Sequence record: NC_048046.1
Direction: 5' to 3' (one strand)
DNA: 64,000 nucleotides
Position numbers and translations under genes: made by a program. The number at the start of each line of letters is the position of its first letter. Position 1 is the stretch's first letter. Shown here one piece after another: positions 14,141 through 21,958 of this stretch. Below the pieces are notes generated by a model. That model saw nothing but the letters and a program-made list of their open reading frames with translations, was not told the DNA's origin and made no database searches.

Positions 14141-14885
14141 AGAACATCTCAGCCTTGGCGTGGGGGAGCGTCACGGCCTTCTGCCAGTCCCACACGTAGA
14201 ACGCGTAGGAGAAGCGAGGGCTCGCGGACTTTTCGCCTTCCTTCTTCTCGACCCAGACCGGGCGGAAGCGCAGGGTAATCTTGGCGGCGAAGGCGGGGTG
14301 GTCGATCAGATCAGCGCGTCCCTTGGCGGCGTCCCACTCGTGGCGCATCAGGAAGGCGACGTAGCCGTGCTGCGCTTCCATCAGTTCGAGGGCCTTGCGG
14401 ACCGCGCGATCGGTGTCCTTGCCGTAGGGCGGGTTGGAGATGATGCAGTCGGGCGTGAAGCCCAGCATCTCGGTGATCTCCGAGAACGGGCGCGGGCGGA
14501 CTGGTGTGGGCTCGGAGCCCAACCAGACGCCGTCGTCGCCGGTGTTCTTGTCGATCAGGCGCTCCCAGGCGGCCAGGGCGCTGTCAAACGCCTCGCCGTC
14601 CGGGTAGATGCTGAAGAAATCGACCAGACCGTTCGCGTCGAACCCGTCGTAAGCGAAGATGTCGGTGGCGCCGGCGGCGCGGCAGAAGTTCTTGATGATG
14701 TTGTAGATGGCTCCGTTACCTGCGAACGGCTCCCAGAATTGCATCGCCTCCAGATCATCCTCCACGACCGAGACGAATGCGTTCGTCGCTCGGGCGGGGG
14801 TCGGGTAGAAATCAAGAGCCGCACGCTCGTAGTTCGTGCCGCCCAGCATGGAAGGGTCCTTACGACCCGTGTCGGTGATAGCCAT
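14130..14885 (-). CDS. DNA N6-adenine/N4-cytosine methyltransferase
   Basis: DFYPTP, WEPFAGNG (motif I) and SNPPY (motif IV); start placed at 14885 because 14933 lies within the promoter. Confidence 0.75.
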   Translation of the reverse strand: MAITDTGRKDPSMLGGTNYERAALDFYPTPARATNAFVSVVEDDLEAMQFWEPFAGNGAIYNIIKNFCRAAGATDIFAYDGFDANGLVDFFSIYPDGEAFDSALAAWERLIDKNTGDDGVWLGSEPTPVRPRPFSEITEMLGFTPDCIISNPPYGKDTDRAVRKALELMEAQHGYVAFLMRHEWDAAKGRADLIDHPAFAAKITLRFRPVWVEKKEGEKSASPRFSYAFYVWDWQKAVTLPHAKAEMFYAG

Positions 14886-14900
14886 GCCGGGATAACTGGC

Positions 14901-14975
14901 ATGGTTAACCGAAAGCGTCAAGAATCCTGGCATTTCTCTCCAGGCTTGACCGTTAAGGCCCTTATGGATAAGGAA
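14901..14975. promoter_or_regulatory. divergent promoter region between the replication module and the ncRNA island
   Basis: ATGGTTAAC 14901-14909, palindrome CGTCAAGAATCCTGGCA 14916-14932 (minus TTGACG), plus-strand TTGACC at 14946. Confidence 0.55.
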
Positions 14976-15170
14976 TAATCAACCGAGGCGGGTCCACCAC
15001 ACCAACCGCGTGCCTCACGCTCTGCGCGCGAATTGACCGTAACTCGAAATCGCCGGCGCCTCAGGTGGAGGAGGTCAAGGCAATGGGCGAAGGACGGGCG
15101 CGGCGAGCGTATAATCGAGGCCGGCTAAAGCTCCTGGGAGTGTAGGTGTCCTGCCACCGTTCCCACGATG

Positions 15171-15249
15171 CACGGGATCGACAGGTCCGTGTGACGCGAA
15201 CGCCGGCCGAGAACAGACGACAAGGCGTGACGCCCGGAGAGAGTGCCGG
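15171..15249 (+). ncRNA. repeated structured RNA module, copy 1
   Basis: CACGG/CCGTG helix, TGACGCGAACGCCGGCCGA, GGCGTGACG, CCGG-AGAGAGTG-CCGG hairpin. Confidence 0.7.
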
Positions 15250-15374
15250 ACTTCTTGACACGACGACCTAGATCGGAGACACCTTGGGTCGACTAGGGGA
15301 CCTGGGGTGGTGCGAATTGGCTTCCACCTACAGTCATCTGGCAGCCTTTGGGACCCCAGGCTGTCGGGCTCAAC

Positions 15375-15473
15375 GGTGATGAGATGCCAACGGCTGGCTG
15401 GAATGCCGAATTCACCTGACGCGAACGCCGGCCGAGACGATACGACCAGGGCGTGACGGGGGCCAGAGGCCTC
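15375..15473 (+). ncRNA. repeated structured RNA module, copy 2
   Basis: GGTGA/TCACC helix, same 19-nt core at 15417, GGGGCC-AGA-GGCCTC hairpin. Confidence 0.7.
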
Positions 15474-15642
15474 GATCCTTTACTTGACCGGTGCCAAGAG
15501 TTCTGGCATCCAGACTGTGATTTCTCAGGGGCCTCGGTTTCTGAGGGACCTAATCAGGCGATCGTGACCGTCTCAATGGTGCTGTCCAGCGAGAAGATCG
15601 TGAGCCCGCGTATGAGATGTCATTTACGCGCGGGACACCCAT

Positions 15643-15728
15643 GGTGGTAGGGAGCCGCTGAGTGGCCCACCTGACGCGAACGCCGGCCGAAAAGTACGAT
15701 CAGGCGTGACGATGGGGAGAGAACCCAT
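15643..15728 (+). ncRNA. repeated structured RNA module, copy 3
   Basis: GGTGG/CCACC helix, core at 15672, ATGGG-GAGAGAA-CCCAT hairpin. Confidence 0.7.
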
Positions 15729-15770
15729 TCAACTTCCGCAGGCGGTCGAGGCCGTCGATTAGGAATTCAA

Positions 15771-16364
15771 ATGCCTACTACCATCGAAACGGACAACGTC
15801 CGTCGCGTGGACTACACCGTTCGCGCCCACATCACCTACTCCGTCCATGAACATGTCAGCCACGGGTCTTCCGGCTCGGAGCGTGAAATCGTACGCAGTG
15901 TGCCTCTGGGCGAGGCGCGCAGCATGGCGGAAATGCACGCAAAGGCGTCGACCGGACAGGTTAAGTTGCGTACGGTCGATGTCCAGGAGGACTACTATGG
16001 GGCGGACAGCCTGCCTTTGGGGCTCCAGCATGTGTTTCGGGAACTGCTTGAGCATCCCAACGGTACGAAGTGGGTGCTCTCGCGAGTAAATCCCCACACT
16101 GGACCGATGCTACGCATTCAACGTTACACGCCTCAGGAAATCCCTCTGACGCCGGCGCGTAATCCTTGGGATGAACTCACGGTCGCCCAAATGCGTCAGA
16201 CGCTCGTCGCCCTTCGTGCGCTGCCGTGGGAGGCTGCGAAGGCTCTGCGCCTTCAAGCCTATCAGGATCGCGACGTTCATTTTATCGAAGTGCTCAACCG
16301 CGCTGAGGTCGCCATGGACGTTATCGACCCGGCGCAGGTCAACGAATTGCGCCTGACGGACTAG
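15771..16364 (+). CDS. hypothetical protein (197 aa) embedded in the ncRNA island
   Basis: AGGA RBS at 15761, ATG, clean stop; the only CDS inside the RNA island. Confidence 0.75.
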   Translation: MPTTIETDNVRRVDYTVRAHITYSVHEHVSHGSSGSEREIVRSVPLGEARSMAEMHAKASTGQVKLRTVDVQEDYYGADSLPLGLQHVFRELLEHPNGTKWVLSRVNPHTGPMLRIQRYTPQEIPLTPARNPWDELTVAQMRQTLVALRALPWEAAKALRLQAYQDRDVHFIEVLNRAEVAMDVIDPAQVNELRLTD

Positions 16365-16511
16365 TTTCTTGACAAGAGGCGGTGCTGCGCATATCCAGAT
16401 CGGAGATGTCGCAGCACCGCTGCCGGCGACGTCCAGGGTGCTGTCCCTGGAATAACCGATCGGCTTGGAAGACAACTCCTTGGGGTAAGGACTGCTGAAC
16501 CCCTGACGGCT

Positions 16512-16595
16512 GACAGGCTCCGGGAGTCAATGTCCTGTCTGACGCGAACGCCGGCCGAGATTAGGCGACGAGGCGTGACGGGGGCCAGAGGCCCT
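16512..16595 (+). ncRNA. repeated structured RNA module, copy 4
   Basis: GACAGG/CCTGTC helix, core at 16540, GGGGCC-AGA-GGCCCT hairpin; ends 6 nt before the tRNA. Confidence 0.7.
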
Positions 16596-16601
16596 ACACC
16601 T

Positions 16602-16686
16602 GCTACGGTGGACTGAATGGTAAGGCGCGGGACTGCAAATCCTGTCGGCGAAAGCCTCGTGGGTTCGATTCCCACCCGTAGCTCCA
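16602..16686 (+). tRNA. tRNA with GCA (Cys) anticodon and long variable arm
   Basis: acceptor GCTACGG/CCGTAGC, U73, encoded CCA, anticodon loop CTGCAAA, V-arm GGC-GAAA-GCC, T-arm GTGGG-TTCGATT-CCCAC. Confidence 0.88.
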
Positions 16687-16715
16687 AAATTCCTGACATT
16701 TTTATGCCAGCCTGC

Positions 16716-16744
16716 TTGACAACTGAAAAGTCGTCCGGTACACA
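16716..16744 (+). promoter_or_regulatory. sigma70-like promoter of the tmRNA
   Basis: TTGACA-17 nt-TACACA; the -35 is the right half of the palindrome TGCCAGCCTGCTTGACA (16705-16721). Confidence 0.65.
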
Positions 16745-16750
16745 CTCCTC

Positions 16751-17175
16751 ATCGTCGTAATTCGGATGACGTGATTGGTGTCAAGACGCGGGTGCGATTC
16801 CCGCCGGCTCCACCAAAACCCCACCGGCCGACGCTTCGGCGTCACGACCTGCCCCAGCGACAGGTCGGTATCTGAACGGTACGGTGGGGTTCTGATGGGG
16901 CCGATCAGTTTCGATTGGCATTGAGAGTGAAGGACGCGACGTAGGGTGATCTCCTAGCCAAGGCTTCGGCTGAGGTAATTGGGTCAAACGCTGACAAATG
17001 TCAACGACAACGACGCTCCCGTGATGGAGCAACGTCTGGCGGCCTAAGGGCCTCCAGCGGCGCCCGGTGGGGGCGTGGCAACAGAACCCCACCACCCTGC
17101 TTCCGCAGCCGGAGGCGTTGGTACAGGGCGTTTCTGTCGGCAACCGTTTCGCCGCCTTTACGTCTCCGGCTACGA
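16751..17175 (+). ncRNA. ssrA: circularly permuted two-piece tmRNA (ends approximate)
   Basis: acceptor piece ending GCGGGTGCGATTCCCGCCGGCTCCACCA (16815) precedes the coding piece starting GGGGCCG (16897) with G3.U70; tag frame 17000-17047 VNDNDAPVMEQRLAA*. Confidence 0.9.
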
Positions 17176-17186
17176 AAACAGGTTTG

Positions 17187-17264
17187 GGGAGTAGTCCTCC
17201 GAGGGATCGGAGAATAACGCTCTCCGGGGAGGCGCCTGGGACCATCCAGCCCAGACCGTCTCCC
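17187..17264 (+). ncRNA. candidate multibranched structured RNA
   Basis: GGGAG/CTCCC closing stem, CCTCC/GGAGG, CGGAGA/TCTCCG and CTGGG/CCCAG helices. Confidence 0.45.
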
Positions 17265-17273
17265 GAATTTTAT

Positions 17274-17336
17274 GCCGGGGATAGGGTGGTCGCTCGCCCT
17301 AAACAGTTCGGGTAAGCTCCGGCTGCCCCGGCTCCA
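17274..17336 (+). ncRNA. 63-nt tRNA-like mini RNA
   Basis: 7-bp GCCGGGG/CCCCGGC stem plus T plus CCA; only two internal hairpins, no TTCRA loop. Confidence 0.5.
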
Positions 17337-17343
17337 AGTTTGA

Positions 17344-17420
17344 TGCGGGGTGGAGCAGTCCGGTAGCTCGTTTGGCTCATAACCAAAAGGTCGAGGGTTC
17401 AAATCCCTCCCCCGCATCCA
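17344..17420 (+). tRNA. tRNA-Met (CAT), initiator-like body
   Basis: TGCGGGG/CCCCGCA acceptor, GGAGCAGTCCGGTAGCTC D-arm, loop CTCATAA, GAGGG-TTCAAAT-CCCTC, CCA. Confidence 0.92.
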
Positions 17421-17544
17421 CAAGCTGAAGCTCCGATGGCGGCCCTAGGCCGCAGCTTTACCCGGTCCCACGTCGGACAAGGCCGGGGTCTAGGTGGTGA
17501 GATATGATCGACGCCGGCGGAGCGCCAAGCCACCTTCCGCCACC

Positions 17545-17580
17545 AACGCCGTGTGCGTGACAAGCCTGGAGAGAACGGGC
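17545..17580 (+). ncRNA. repeated RNA module, short copy 5
   Basis: AACGC-CGTGT-GCGTGAC-AA-GCCTG-GAGAGAA-CGGGC. Confidence 0.55.
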
Positions 17581-17610
17581 ACTCCAATCCGGGGTATGAG
17601 GCCGGATGTA

Positions 17611-17656
17611 GCGAACGCCAGCGAGATCGGCGTGACTGGTGGGGGAGAGGACCCAC
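17611..17656 (+). ncRNA. repeated RNA module, copy 6
   Basis: GCGAACGCC-AGCGAGATC-GGCGTGAC-TG-GTGGG-GGAGAGGA-CCCAC. Confidence 0.6.
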
Positions 17657-17739
17657 GCTGATTTTGCTGAACGCACGCTACGGCGTGCGTTTTGCTAATT
17701 CAGCTTCGTCGTGGGGGGTTCGACTCCCCAAGTTCGCGC

Positions 17740-17813
17740 CTCCTAGGGCGTTAGGGCTGCGAGGGACAGCGGCGGATAAACGGGAGTTGCCGGTTCGAGT
17801 CCGGCCTGGGAGG
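17740..17813 (+). ncRNA. tRNA-like element with canonical acceptor and T arms but a non-canonical middle
   Basis: CTCCTAG/CTGGGAG stem, GCCGG-TTCGAGT-CCGGC T-arm; no U33 anticodon loop, no CCA. Confidence 0.5.
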
Positions 17814-17868
17814 GCACTAGGAACCCTGCTGGTGGAGGTAATTGGAGAACCTCGTCCGACCTATTTTT

Positions 17869-17955
17869 GGTGTGGTGGCTCGACAGGTAAGGCGCCGGCC
17901 TCATAAGCCGGAGGGCGAAAGTCCTATGTAGGTTCAAATCCTACCCACACCTCCA
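17869..17955 (+). tRNA. tRNA with CAT anticodon and long variable arm
   Basis: GGTGTGG/CCACACC, U73, CCA; CCGGC-CTCATAA-GCCGG; V-arm AGGGC-GAAA-GTCCT; GTAGG-TTCAAAT-CCTAC. Confidence 0.88.
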
Positions 17956-17978
17956 ACTATGCGACGCCCCAGCGTCCG

Positions 17979-18145
17979 GACGACTCCCTGGTCGGTAACC
18001 ACTCCGCCACAGGGACTCCCAGCCGGGGATAGCATGCCGAGGACGGAAGGCGCATGCCGTGACTGCCGGGAGAGTACGGTATCGAGTGAAAGCCGTGAGG
18101 CAGACCCTAGTTGCTCGACGGGGGTCGTGAGGTGGAAGCCCTCAC
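17979..18145 (+). ncRNA. candidate structured RNA containing module copy 7 (18043-18081)
   Basis: 9-bp long-range helix ACGACTCCC/GGGGGTCGT; ACGG...CCGTGAC-TGCCG-GGAGAGTA-CGGTA; GCC-GTGA-GGC; GTGAGG-TGGAAGC-CCTCAC. Confidence 0.55.
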
Positions 18146-18153
18146 ACCTTCCC

Positions 18154-18402
18154 TTAATTGAACAAAAGCTGCTTGCTGTCGGCACGGAATGCGACGCCGA
18201 GTTCGATCAGGATGCGCTTGATCGTGGCGTAGAAGTTCAGCACAGCACGGTGATCCGAGATCGAACCACCCGTTACCAATGTGCGGGTCTTCCCGGCATG
18301 CTGGACGCGAATCTTGCAGTGCTTGTTGCGCTCGACCTCGAACTCCACGTCGTGGTGCTTGAGGATGCGTTTCGCCATCTCTACGGTGTCGCGGCCAGCC
18401 AT
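18154..18402 (-). CDS. HicA-like small protein (82 aa)
   Basis: helix-three strands-helix pattern with RNKHCKIR, size typical of HicA/dsRBD-fold proteins; no HicB nearby. Confidence 0.45.
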   Translation of the reverse strand: MAGRDTVEMAKRILKHHDVEFEVERNKHCKIRVQHAGKTRTLVTGGSISDHRAVLNFYATIKRILIELGVAFRADSKQLLFN

Positions 18403-20749: not shown

Positions 20750-21958
20750 CTACTGGAACTCGGTGCCGCCCTTGCGGGTCAGGTACGCTTCAGAAACGTG
20801 CTTCAGGATCGGGCGCAGGCGCTTTCCCGAGTCGAGCGTACGCTTGCGCTGATCGCCGGCGGCCGTGACCACCACACCTTCGCGGACGTTCGGGCCATGC
20901 TCTTGATCCATCTTGCGGCCGAGCGTAGTCGTGCCCGACGCCAGCTTGTCGATCACGGTGCGATCGAACGGCCCCTTGTAGAGGACTGGCACGCGGTCGA
21001 CGCCCAGGATGGTGAAGAAGGTTTCCTTGTCGGCGTCGTCCAGATAGACCGTACCGAGGTTATCGGTGATCGCGACGTCGAATGCAGCGAACGCCTTGGT
21101 CGTGAGGCCGTAGTGCAGGTCTTGTACGCCGGCGCCGTAGACCTCGCCCAGCAGGTGGACACGGCAGCCGGGGAACCGGGCCTGGGCCACGGCCTGGAGC
21201 TTGTCGGCCAGGGGCGCGAGGGCCTTGACGTACAGAGTCTTCTCCAGGTTCTTCTCGACGTTGATAAACGTCAGGCCGTCGGCGCCCATACCCTTCGTCG
21301 AGATCGCGACGCGGCCGTCACCGAACAATTCGGGATCGGGCGCGGCGTCATCAACGTGGCTGATGCGAGCCAGAGTACCGTGCAGCTTCTCGGTGACGAC
21401 GACTTCTTCGCCGTCCTCGAACAGGTCCGGGAACGCCTTGATGTTCTCGATGTCGTAGTCCAGACGTGACTCGAAGACGCCCTTCATCAGGCCGTCCATG
21501 CTGGTCGGCACTTCTGGGATGTACTTGGTGATGCCGAAGAACGACGCGACGTCTTCGTACAGCGCGACCTTCTTACGGCCGGCGGGGTAGACGCCTTGAG
21601 CGGCGTCCCCGTAGCCGATCACGGTGCGGCCGTTGACGTCACTGGTCTTCCAGACGAGGCCCTGGCTCAGCACACCACGCAGCGTGATAGCCTTAACGCG
21701 ATTGCCGCGCGTGCCCGCCAGGATGCCGACACCCTTGTCCGCGTTCCAGTAGCCGCGCTCCTGGAGATGCTGGTCCGGAACGACCGCGCCCTCGGGCACA
21801 TAGATGACGCTCTCGCCCTTGGCGTAGCGGTGGGAGCCGTCGGGGTTCTTGTTGGCGATCGCCTCGTAGCCACGAATACGCAGGATCGACAGGCGGTCGG
21901 CATTGGGGTGGTCGTAGACGTCGTCGACCAGCAGGATCGGGACTTCAAAAGTGCTCAT
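20750..21958 (-). CDS. RNA ligase (DRB0094/Rnl2-like) with N-terminal OB domain
   Basis: HPNADRL OB-fold start, TEKLHGT adenylation motif, GEVYG, FDV, REGVVV. Confidence 0.88.
   Translation of the reverse strand: MSTFEVPILLVDDVYDHPNADRLSILRIRGYEAIANKNPDGSHRYAKGESVIYVPEGAVVPDQHLQERGYWNADKGVGILAGTRGNRVKAITLRGVLSQGLVWKTSDVNGRTVIGYGDAAQGVYPAGRKKVALYEDVASFFGITKYIPEVPTSMDGLMKGVFESRLDYDIENIKAFPDLFEDGEEVVVTEKLHGTLARISHVDDAAPDPELFGDGRVAISTKGMGADGLTFINVEKNLEKTLYVKALAPLADKLQAVAQARFPGCRVHLLGEVYGAGVQDLHYGLTTKAFAAFDVAITDNLGTVYLDDADKETFFTILGVDRVPVLYKGPFDRTVIDKLASGTTTLGRKMDQEHGPNVREGVVVTAAGDQRKRTLDSGKRLRPILKHVSEAYLTRKGGTEFQ

Follow-up and report, generated by a model that had tools for sequence, protein, structure and literature searches.

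A conserved, covarying RNA module closes units with putative promoters in the RNA island of Caulobacter phage CcrPW

The RNA island of Caulobacter phage CcrPW (308,141 bp; Dolichocephalovirinae, genus Colossusvirus) contains four units that are preceded by putative promoters and that close with the same module of ~75 nucleotides (nt), and comparison across related phages shows that this module is a conserved RNA structure supported by covariation. We analysed bases 124001–188000 of the genome (record NC_048046.1), a 64,000-nt stretch referred to here as the window; positions are those of the window unless a genome or contig is named. The units lie in the left portion of a 3.2-kb region with a single annotated protein gene, which encodes 197 amino acids (aa). 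An earlier note on this DNA had described a paralogous family of individually promoted RNAs with variable 5′ bodies and a constant 3′ handle, and had named the 197-aa protein as the natural candidate for a partner. The family and its handle are borne out by compensatory changes in the module, whereas the distribution of the module proves to be independent of the 197-aa open reading frame (ORF), and also of Ro60.

The explanation that we favour, with a probability of about 0.5, combines promoter-preceded small RNAs, a pseudoknotted module that marks their ends and a passenger ORF. The island would encode a family of small structured phage RNAs of ~185–215 nt, each starting from its own sigma-70-type promoter (−35 TTGAC) and each composed of a specific body of ~125–150 nt and the constant ~75-nt 3′ module. 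The module would mark the 3′ boundary of the unit, with the next promoter, tRNA or ribosome-binding site following at once. Its near-invariant core may be the recognition site of a factor common to phiCbK-like phages or their hosts (a protein, for example, or a ribonuclease, or RNA polymerase itself) that would define or protect RNA ends; distinct, stable RNAs would thereby arise from closely packed genes. This factor would not be the product of the 197-aa gene, which would instead be an accessory gene behind module 3, read from the unit-3 transcript; the related phage CcrColossus would have lost both this gene and unit 4 when two module copies recombined. That the module is a recognition or processing element marking the end of the unit is our best guess as to its role.

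A structured module behind promoter-like elements

Units and protein gene of the flagged portion, with scores from R1, a covariance model built from 12 module copies:
15033–15252, + strand: unit 1, with TTGACC (15033–15038), variable body and 3′ module at 15177–15252 (R1, 69.9 bits)
15255–15478, + strand: unit 2, with TTGACA (15255–15260), variable body and 3′ module at 15402–15478 (R1, 77.2 bits)
15484–15731, + strand: unit 3, with extended −10-type promoter TTGACC-N14-TGG-CATCCA (15484–15512), body and 3′ module at 15657–15731 (R1, 69 bits)
15741–15770, + strand: 5′ untranslated region (UTR) of the 197-aa ORF, with hairpin GGCGGU-CGAG-GCCGUC (15741–15756) and Shine–Dalgarno sequence AGGA (15761–15764)
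15771–16364, + strand: gene for the 197-aa protein, the sole annotated coding sequence in the island
16369–16600, + strand: unit 4, with TTGACA-N17-TATCCA, body and 3′ module at 16525–16600 (R1, 84.6 bits)

The core of the module, TGACGCGAACGCCGGCCGA, starts at 15192, 15417, 15672 and 16540, always on the + strand; 0.14 matches were expected and no further copy exists in the 308-kb genome. Successive cores start 225, 255 and 868 nt apart, and the bodies between them are unique. TTGAC(C/A) hexamers start 159, 162, 188 and 171 nt before the cores (at 15033, 15255, 15484 and 16369), the positions and distances that the earlier note had given. Given a density of TTGAC in the CcrPW genome of ~1.03 per kb per strand, the chance that all four modules have one 146–203 nt upstream is ~1 × 10−5. 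The same arrangement recurs in 20 of 29 module instances across phages, most often at a distance of 152–162 nt, and supports the claim of individual promoters as promoter-like elements. Several of these hexamers are followed by a 17-nt spacer ending in TGG and then by CATCCA, CATATC, CATCAA or CATACG, which resembles an extended −10-type promoter; the ‘TGG CAT…’ context of unit 3 is also found in units of the contigs L010 and L059 (described below). A scan for E. coli-type promoters found none, and the −10 elements are non-canonical.

The consensus of the module is cUGAnGcGAACGCCGgCcgAgA-nnnn-cgAc-nA-GGCGUGACg, after which comes a hairpin whose loop is (C)AGAG. We predict a helix P1 of 5 bp (ACGCC/GGCGU), a crossing helix P2 of 2–3 bp in which the G–C of ‘GCGAA’ pairs with the G–C of ‘GGCC’, and the closing hairpin. 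Base pairs were counted on 33 distinct module sequences. P1 is paired in 99.4% of cases and four of its five pairs are altered on both sides in some copy; the hairpin has GC, CG, AU, UA and GU variants; and the inner two pairs of P2, a helix absent from the search model R1, are paired in every sequence (CG 25, GC 4, AU 1, GU 1, UG 1). Overall, 89.3% of cells are paired compared with 74.0% in shuffles (0 of 500 reach the observed value), and the fraction falls to 34–44% in registers shifted by one to three columns. Ten of the 12 module pairs are altered on both sides, and the G–U pairs present fit the + strand. These compensatory changes indicate that the module works as RNA, and because the strands of P2 interleave with those of P1, it would form an H-type pseudoknot or else two alternating helices. 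In phiCbK the 5′ flank can pair with the variable loop L3 over 7 bp, but this is not general (permutation p = 0.44). A likeness of L3 in Domovoi and Marchewka to the loop of the guanidine-III riboswitch was dropped, there being no Rfam ykkC-III match.

The unit-specific helices named in the earlier note are present, but by energy the bodies are not ‘full of’ helices beyond chance, as those of units 1–4 fold no better than dinucleotide shuffles (z from −1.19 to +0.90). Unit 1 is 94% identical to unit 1 of CcrColossus; another TTGACC at 14946 could be its real start. The −35 hexamer of unit 2 starts a few nucleotides past the model end of the unit-1 module. The body of unit 4 has a conserved 5′ CGCAGCACCG (16410–16419), that is CGCAGCAC(C/U)G, which is predicted to pair with a conserved downstream GGACUGC. 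Orthologs of this body in phiCbK, Magneto, Rogue, BL10, BL57 and L010 make unit 4 the most widely conserved unit, and units 1–3 are additional paralogs of the jumbo members of the subfamily. Unit 4 ends 1 nt before tRNA-Cys, which leaves no space for a separate tRNA promoter.

Across phages, four kinds of sequence follow the closing hairpin. The next −35 hexamer starts between 4 nt before and 10 nt after the model end in at least eight cases; a tRNA starts within 0–12 nt in at least four (CcrPW unit 4, CcrColossus unit 3, L010 and L058); a Shine–Dalgarno sequence and ATG follow CcrPW unit 3, L010:1333, L010:1773 and copies in L058 and L059; and in phiCbK-type phages there is ~150 nt more RNA up to a bidirectional terminator. 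An intrinsic terminator scan found none at modules 1–4, a U-rich tail being present only at the 17639–17656 copy. Two small ORFs in L010 (L010:1402–1593 and L010:1765–2127) have a Shine–Dalgarno sequence and ATG within ~15 nt of a module and no Pfam match, and the stop codon of the first overlaps the TTGACC of the next unit; small genes therefore seem to lodge repeatedly behind modules.

Transcription of the module-bearing region is observed in a relative. Four RNA-seq runs contain a Karma-like phage, and assembler contigs from them, which show neither strand nor transcript ends, include a separate contig that spans the module (L012:2287, 2351 or 2382 to 2899–2909). Its word depth is 972–1388 compared with 304–528 for the upstream genes, and in three of the four runs the depth over the module-bearing stretch is 2–4-fold that of the neighbouring genes. 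The contig start furthest to the left, L012:2287, coincides with the start predicted by a TTGACT-N17-TAGACA promoter, and the contig end with the position of a terminator hairpin.

Distribution of the module and of the 197-aa gene

All 13 related phage loci searched with R1 contain the module, in each case next to tRNA-Cys and tmRNA (transfer-messenger RNA); every Dolichocephalovirinae locus that we examined has it, without exception inside the tRNA/tmRNA island.

Module copies per phage or contig:
CcrPW: four strong and one weak, at 17592–17659
CcrColossus: three strong and one weak
phiCbK, Magneto, BL57, Rogue and BL10: one strong each and weaker copies
Bajun: one strong and one weaker
Gurke: one strong and two weaker
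Kikimora: one strong and one weaker
Domovoi: three strong and one weaker
Marchewka: three strong and one weaker
IMG/VR contig L010: seven copies
Colossus-like contig L058: four strong and weaker copies
Colossus-like contig L059: two strong and one weak partial copy

A pattern scan of 185,579 bacterial species genomes gave 11 matches, all of which look like chance because the flanks and hairpin are absent. A metagenome pattern scan gave 12 matches, including one clear relative and three that look related by eye (L039, L047 and L045); the other eight look like chance. CcrColossus lacks CcrPW 15712–16580, which is one module-to-module repeat unit comprising the 197-aa ORF and the unit-4 body, and the junction falls inside the module core. 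As the unit-4 body is widely conserved elsewhere, we read the gap as a deletion in CcrColossus through recombination between modules. At L059:5418–5470 there is a truncated module with only the loop and the 3′ strand of P1 (CGGCCGAGAACCGACGAUCAGGCAUGACGG), directly after a TTGACG that lies ahead of another TTGACA; this fragment is apparently left over from recombination within the array.

The earlier note was right that the ORF at 15771–16364 is the sole coding sequence of the island and has no recognized domain: the protein has no Pfam, PHROG, PADLOC or PDB match. Its GC content by codon position (0.69/0.41/0.69) is of coding type, although the third-position value is below the 0.78–0.84 of neighbouring genes. 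A profile of four relatives found nothing in Pfam or PDB and no detectable RNA-binding domain, an ESM Atlas search gave no usable match, and a single-sequence AlphaFold2 model is poor (pLDDT 41.6). A word-indexed search and tblastn over 50,697 phage genomes found the gene itself alone, and none of the 36 other isolate records with a match to the stretch has it; an exhaustive HMMER search (1.8 × 10^9 representatives) found three relatives. P0002 (54–55% identical) and P0003 (35–37%) occupy the same site in Colossus-like contigs, within the RNA island and before tRNA-Cys. P0004 (32%) comes from a contig of an unrelated phage, where it sits among genes of tail type and has neither a module nor a tRNA within 6 kb.

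In all three Colossus-like genomes that have the gene, it starts 39–43 nt past a module. The 5′ UTR hairpin GGCGGU-CGAG-GCCGUC and AGGA are conserved between CcrPW and L059, whose proteins are only ~35% identical, and there is no other promoter-like site between the unit-3 promoter and the ORF. The constant position of the gene suggests that the unit-3 RNA is the leader of the ORF mRNA, and unit 3 probably serves in this role as well. Flanking proteins are 83–98% and 68–83% identical to their counterparts in the two contigs, compared with 54% and 35% for the 197-aa protein, and the middle third of the gene cannot be aligned at the DNA level with its positional orthologs. This divergence, much faster than that of the neighbours, indicates a fast-evolving accessory gene. 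The four relatives share an invariant R-x-H-x-x-Y-x-V-H block (residues 18–26) near the N terminus of the common core and a conserved C-terminal helical region ending in D-V-x-D-P, neither of which was matched to a known motif. A 2H-phosphoesterase was considered on the strength of the conserved H-x-T/S-Y motif and set aside, as a second H-x-T/S motif is absent.

These data bear directly on the proposal that the variable RNAs, bound through their constant handle, are loaded onto the 197-aa protein as guides or decoys. The gene does lie inside the array, behind a module and a conserved leader hairpin in three of three genomes, which makes a cis relation through the mRNA leader likely. A role as partner does not follow: the co-occurrence check suggested in the earlier note shows gene and module to be distributed largely independently, with the module in every subfamily locus and the protein family in 1 of 50,697 phage genomes; CcrColossus keeps three modules without the gene; and P0004 has no module nearby. 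For the bodies, complementarity to the phage genome does not exceed that of shuffled controls (best match 15 nt, 30.2 bits; shuffles 26–34 bits). With the module widespread without the protein, and the protein family occurring without the module, the partner hypothesis fails by the criterion that the earlier note itself had set; the gene is an unlikely partner of the module, and its loading with guides or decoys is very improbable.

Weighing of alternative explanations

Several points weigh against the explanation that we favour. The putative function of the module is read from its position and conservation. Units 1 and 2 of CcrPW have poor −10 elements. The hairpin is usually without a U-tract, so that the module would mark the end of a unit without being a terminator of the classical kind. 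None of the public RNA runs contains CcrPW; in the Karma-like relative, the module lies inside a continuous contig of ~620 nt that runs to a terminator 150 nt further on, so a long read-through precursor may exist. P1 and P2, as predicted, may form together as a pseudoknot or alternate as a two-state switch.

The unit RNAs might instead be extra Y-RNA-like partners of phage Ro60, with the module as the Ro60-binding site. CcrPW encodes Ro60 (gp440, genome positions 114590–115999; 69% identical to the Kikimora protein), and in the Brevundimonas phages Kikimora, Gurke, Domovoi and Marchewka, Ro60 (TROVE and vWA domains) is directly upstream of the units on the same strand. The module's GCGAACG (GGCGAACG in Gurke) resembles the bacterial Y RNA motif GNCGAAN0-1G (PMC4201824), its GGCGUGAC resembles GGCGUAGAC of the YrlA-like RNAs of these phages (GGCGU(A)GAC-like), and jumbo phages that encode Ro60 mostly have three to four strong copies (Gurke and Kikimora one), compared with one in phages without Ro60. 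Y RNAs (YrlA/YrlB) are likewise small structured RNAs in tandem in phage RNA islands; as in some relatives here, they adjoin Ro60, the units carry a CGAA-containing conserved motif, and the same genome has YrlA-like RNAs. However, phiCbK, Magneto, BL57, Rogue, BL10 and Bajun have the module, and tblastn detects no Ro60 in them; a TROVE profile search, run on five of the six (all but BL10), was likewise negative. There is no match to Rfam YrlA (RF02553) on the units (14800–18200, E up to 10); the weak YrlA matches, below the gathering score, lie upstream of Ro60, in a Ro60/Y-RNA locus in which R1 finds nothing. Y RNAs hold the Ro60 site in a stem of the 5′ and 3′ ends, whereas the ends of the units form no terminal stem and the units have no tRNA-like domain; in minimum-free-energy folds of units 1–4 and in the consensus fold of seven unit-4 orthologs, the 5′ end pairs internally (GCAG..CC/GG..CUGC). 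The Y RNA motif is placed near the 5′ end (PMC4201824), whereas the invariant GCGAACG of the units is in the 3′ module. Y RNAs lie within ~4 kb of Ro60 on the same strand, which holds in the four Brevundimonas phages and not in CcrPW, where Ro60 is 24 kb from the array on the opposite strand. A Ro60-binding role for the module is unlikely, and Ro60 is kept as a minority possibility for the expanded paralogs.

The remaining readings concern how the module itself might act. As a cis-acting regulatory RNA on RNA polymerase or the ribosome (a put-like antiterminator, an attenuator or a ligand-sensing pseudoknot), it would control the downstream tRNA-Cys, ORF or next unit; its fixed distance of ~160 nt from promoters, its compact pseudoknot with near-invariant loop nucleotides of the kind typical of aptamers and polymerase-binding RNAs, the genes directly downstream without their own promoter and the potential of P1 and P2 to be alternative states would all suit this role. 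The items downstream are heterogeneous, however, and include new promoters that need no read-through, most copies have no following terminator, and no Rfam riboswitch or antiterminator family matches, which leaves regulation in cis about as improbable as binding by Ro60. We rate slightly lower a self-cleaving ribozyme or dedicated ribonuclease site that cuts a long precursor into units, tRNA and mRNA: a highly conserved pseudoknotted core of ~45 nt stands at every unit junction, the contig of the relative is continuous across units and the module directly abuts tRNA 5′ ends, yet Rfam holds no likeness to a known ribozyme class, a promoter-like element for each unit makes cutting less necessary, and RNase P would produce the tRNA 5′ end anyway. 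Recombination between copies (the CcrColossus deletion) and the frequent abutment of copies on promoters could also fit a repeat that acts as DNA, as a protein-binding or recombination site with no functional RNA; given compensatory changes and G–U pairs in three helices that fit one transcribed strand, and the orientation of all copies with the RNA genes, this is extremely unlikely. A bolder proposal, unlikely as well although we place it a little ahead of the alternatives above, is that the module represents an autonomous RNA device of a new class (a self-cleaving ribozyme or a polymerase-modifying, put-like antiterminator), with which phiCbK-like phages would both express a densely packed array of RNA genes and cut its products apart without dedicated proteins, while recombination between copies would move bodies and small accessory genes in and out of the array.

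The module and its units were compared with known systems. Rfam 15 (at gathering thresholds, and with E up to 10 over 14800–18200) has no family for the units; matches in the window at the gathering threshold are the tRNAs and tmRNA only, and the best match in the units is Ms_IGR-8, with 18.5 bits compared with a gathering score of 44. No published description of the module was found in the literature. ToxI of type III toxin–antitoxin systems likewise consists of pseudoknot RNA units repeated in direct orientation with a protein gene attached, but its repeats of 36–45 nt are contiguous and cut by the toxin, whereas the modules here are 225–868 nt apart with unique bodies, the 197-aa ORF has no ToxN-like, Pfam or PADLOC match, and most module arrays have no adjacent protein gene. 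Modular small RNAs and guide RNAs share the plan of a variable 5′ and constant 3′ part; here neither a U-tail terminator of the Hfq type nor a cas or Argonaute-type gene is present, the phage genome holds no target complementarity, and some units are leaders of a tRNA or mRNA. The T4 species 1 and 2 RNAs are stable non-tRNA RNAs of a phage tRNA cluster, a likeness that we mention as background and not as evidence. Together with GOLLD and ROOL RNAs they are phage non-coding RNAs of unknown function in tRNA clusters, from which the units differ by their modular build of variable body and constant module; GOLLD, present in the equivalent island of phiCbK, has no sequence or structure similarity to the units. 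Because the defining features of Y RNAs and ToxI were tested and are absent, we file the units as a new structured RNA family, and on the evidence of sequence and covariation the module and units represent a new family among phage-encoded structured small RNAs.

Neighbouring RNA genes and significance

Four further RNA genes were placed using ARAGORN and Rfam, all on the + strand, and weaker module copies lie among them.

Other features of the island:
16602–16686, + strand: tRNA-Cys (GCA) of 85 nt; its variable arm is long, and it is presumably transcribed together with unit 4 (ARAGORN, Rfam)
16712–17138, + strand: permuted (two-piece) alpha-proteobacterial tmRNA (ARAGORN, Rfam)
17344–17420, + strand: tRNA-fMet (ARAGORN, Rfam)
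17546–17580, + strand: partial module, ACGCC...GCGUGAC and a hairpin with a GAGAGAA loop (sequence only)
17592–17659, + strand: divergent fifth module with a short loop (R1, 26.1 bits, E = 3 × 10−5), then an intrinsic terminator at 17657–17704 (inverted repeat; terminator scan)
17869–17955, + strand: second tRNA-Met (CAU), 87 nt, with a long variable arm (ARAGORN, Rfam)
18047–18082, + strand: partial module, GGCGCAUGCC-GUGAC and a hairpin with a GGAGAGUA loop (sequence only)

The tmRNA has its own putative TTGACA promoter at 16716 and the tag VNDNDAPVMEQRLAA, and is missing from the CcrPW RefSeq feature table. tRNA-Cys and the second tRNA-Met are 71% alike over 48 nt, and their long variable arms are unusual for GCA and CAU anticodons. 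The partial copy at 17546–17580 resembles weak R1 matches after tRNA-fMet in phiCbK, Magneto and BL10. A weak Rfam rsmX match (17582–17693; 27 bits, E = 0.023) over the divergent module and terminator, with GGAG/GAGG-like loops, was taken as chance.

The island is bounded on the left by a leftward DNA methyltransferase gene that ends at 14933 and on the right by leftward small genes and a helicase, from 18154. Three genes off the island there is an ATP-dependent Rnl-type RNA ligase (PF09414 and PHA02142 OB domain; 20750–21958, − strand), and the order helicase, small gene, ligase is also kept in L058 and L059. In phiCbK, a GOLLD RNA (RF02032; L007:3570–4056, − strand) lies between tRNA-Cys and tmRNA with an embedded tRNA-Gly and scores 165 bits (gathering score 150); a match in Bajun (L029:4712–5130, − strand) is weaker, at 104 bits, and the CcrPW window has no GOLLD match at threshold. 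RNA-seq contigs of the Karma-like phage have a word depth of 10^4–10^5 at the GOLLD place, compared with 3 × 10^2–1 × 10^3 around it.

YrlA-like sequences accompany Ro60 in several of these phages. In CcrPW, several weak YrlA-like matches lie upstream of gp440 on the same strand (genome positions 114590–117400, outside the window; L034 and L035), and CcrColossus also encodes a Ro60 ortholog 24 kb away with weak YrlA-like matches upstream. Kikimora has four YrlA-like units before Ro60 (L028:1450–2110), with long terminal stems and a (G)UGGCG(U/C)AG motif, one of which is annotated as tRNA-Ser.

Phage tRNA islands are increasingly viewed as tool kits against host defences that target RNA, and most of their non-tRNA RNAs are unannotated. 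In this setting, the near-invariant, probably pseudoknotted handle is carried on different bodies and conserved across Caulobacter and Brevundimonas phages. The module alignment provides an Rfam-type seed for annotating these phages, and a fast-evolving accessory protein that rides in the array is brought to attention. The system is experimentally tractable, as the host Caulobacter is a model organism and CcrColossus offers a natural deletion of one unit and the ORF, and it could reveal what recognizes the handle and whether the handle governs RNA processing, stability or read-through.

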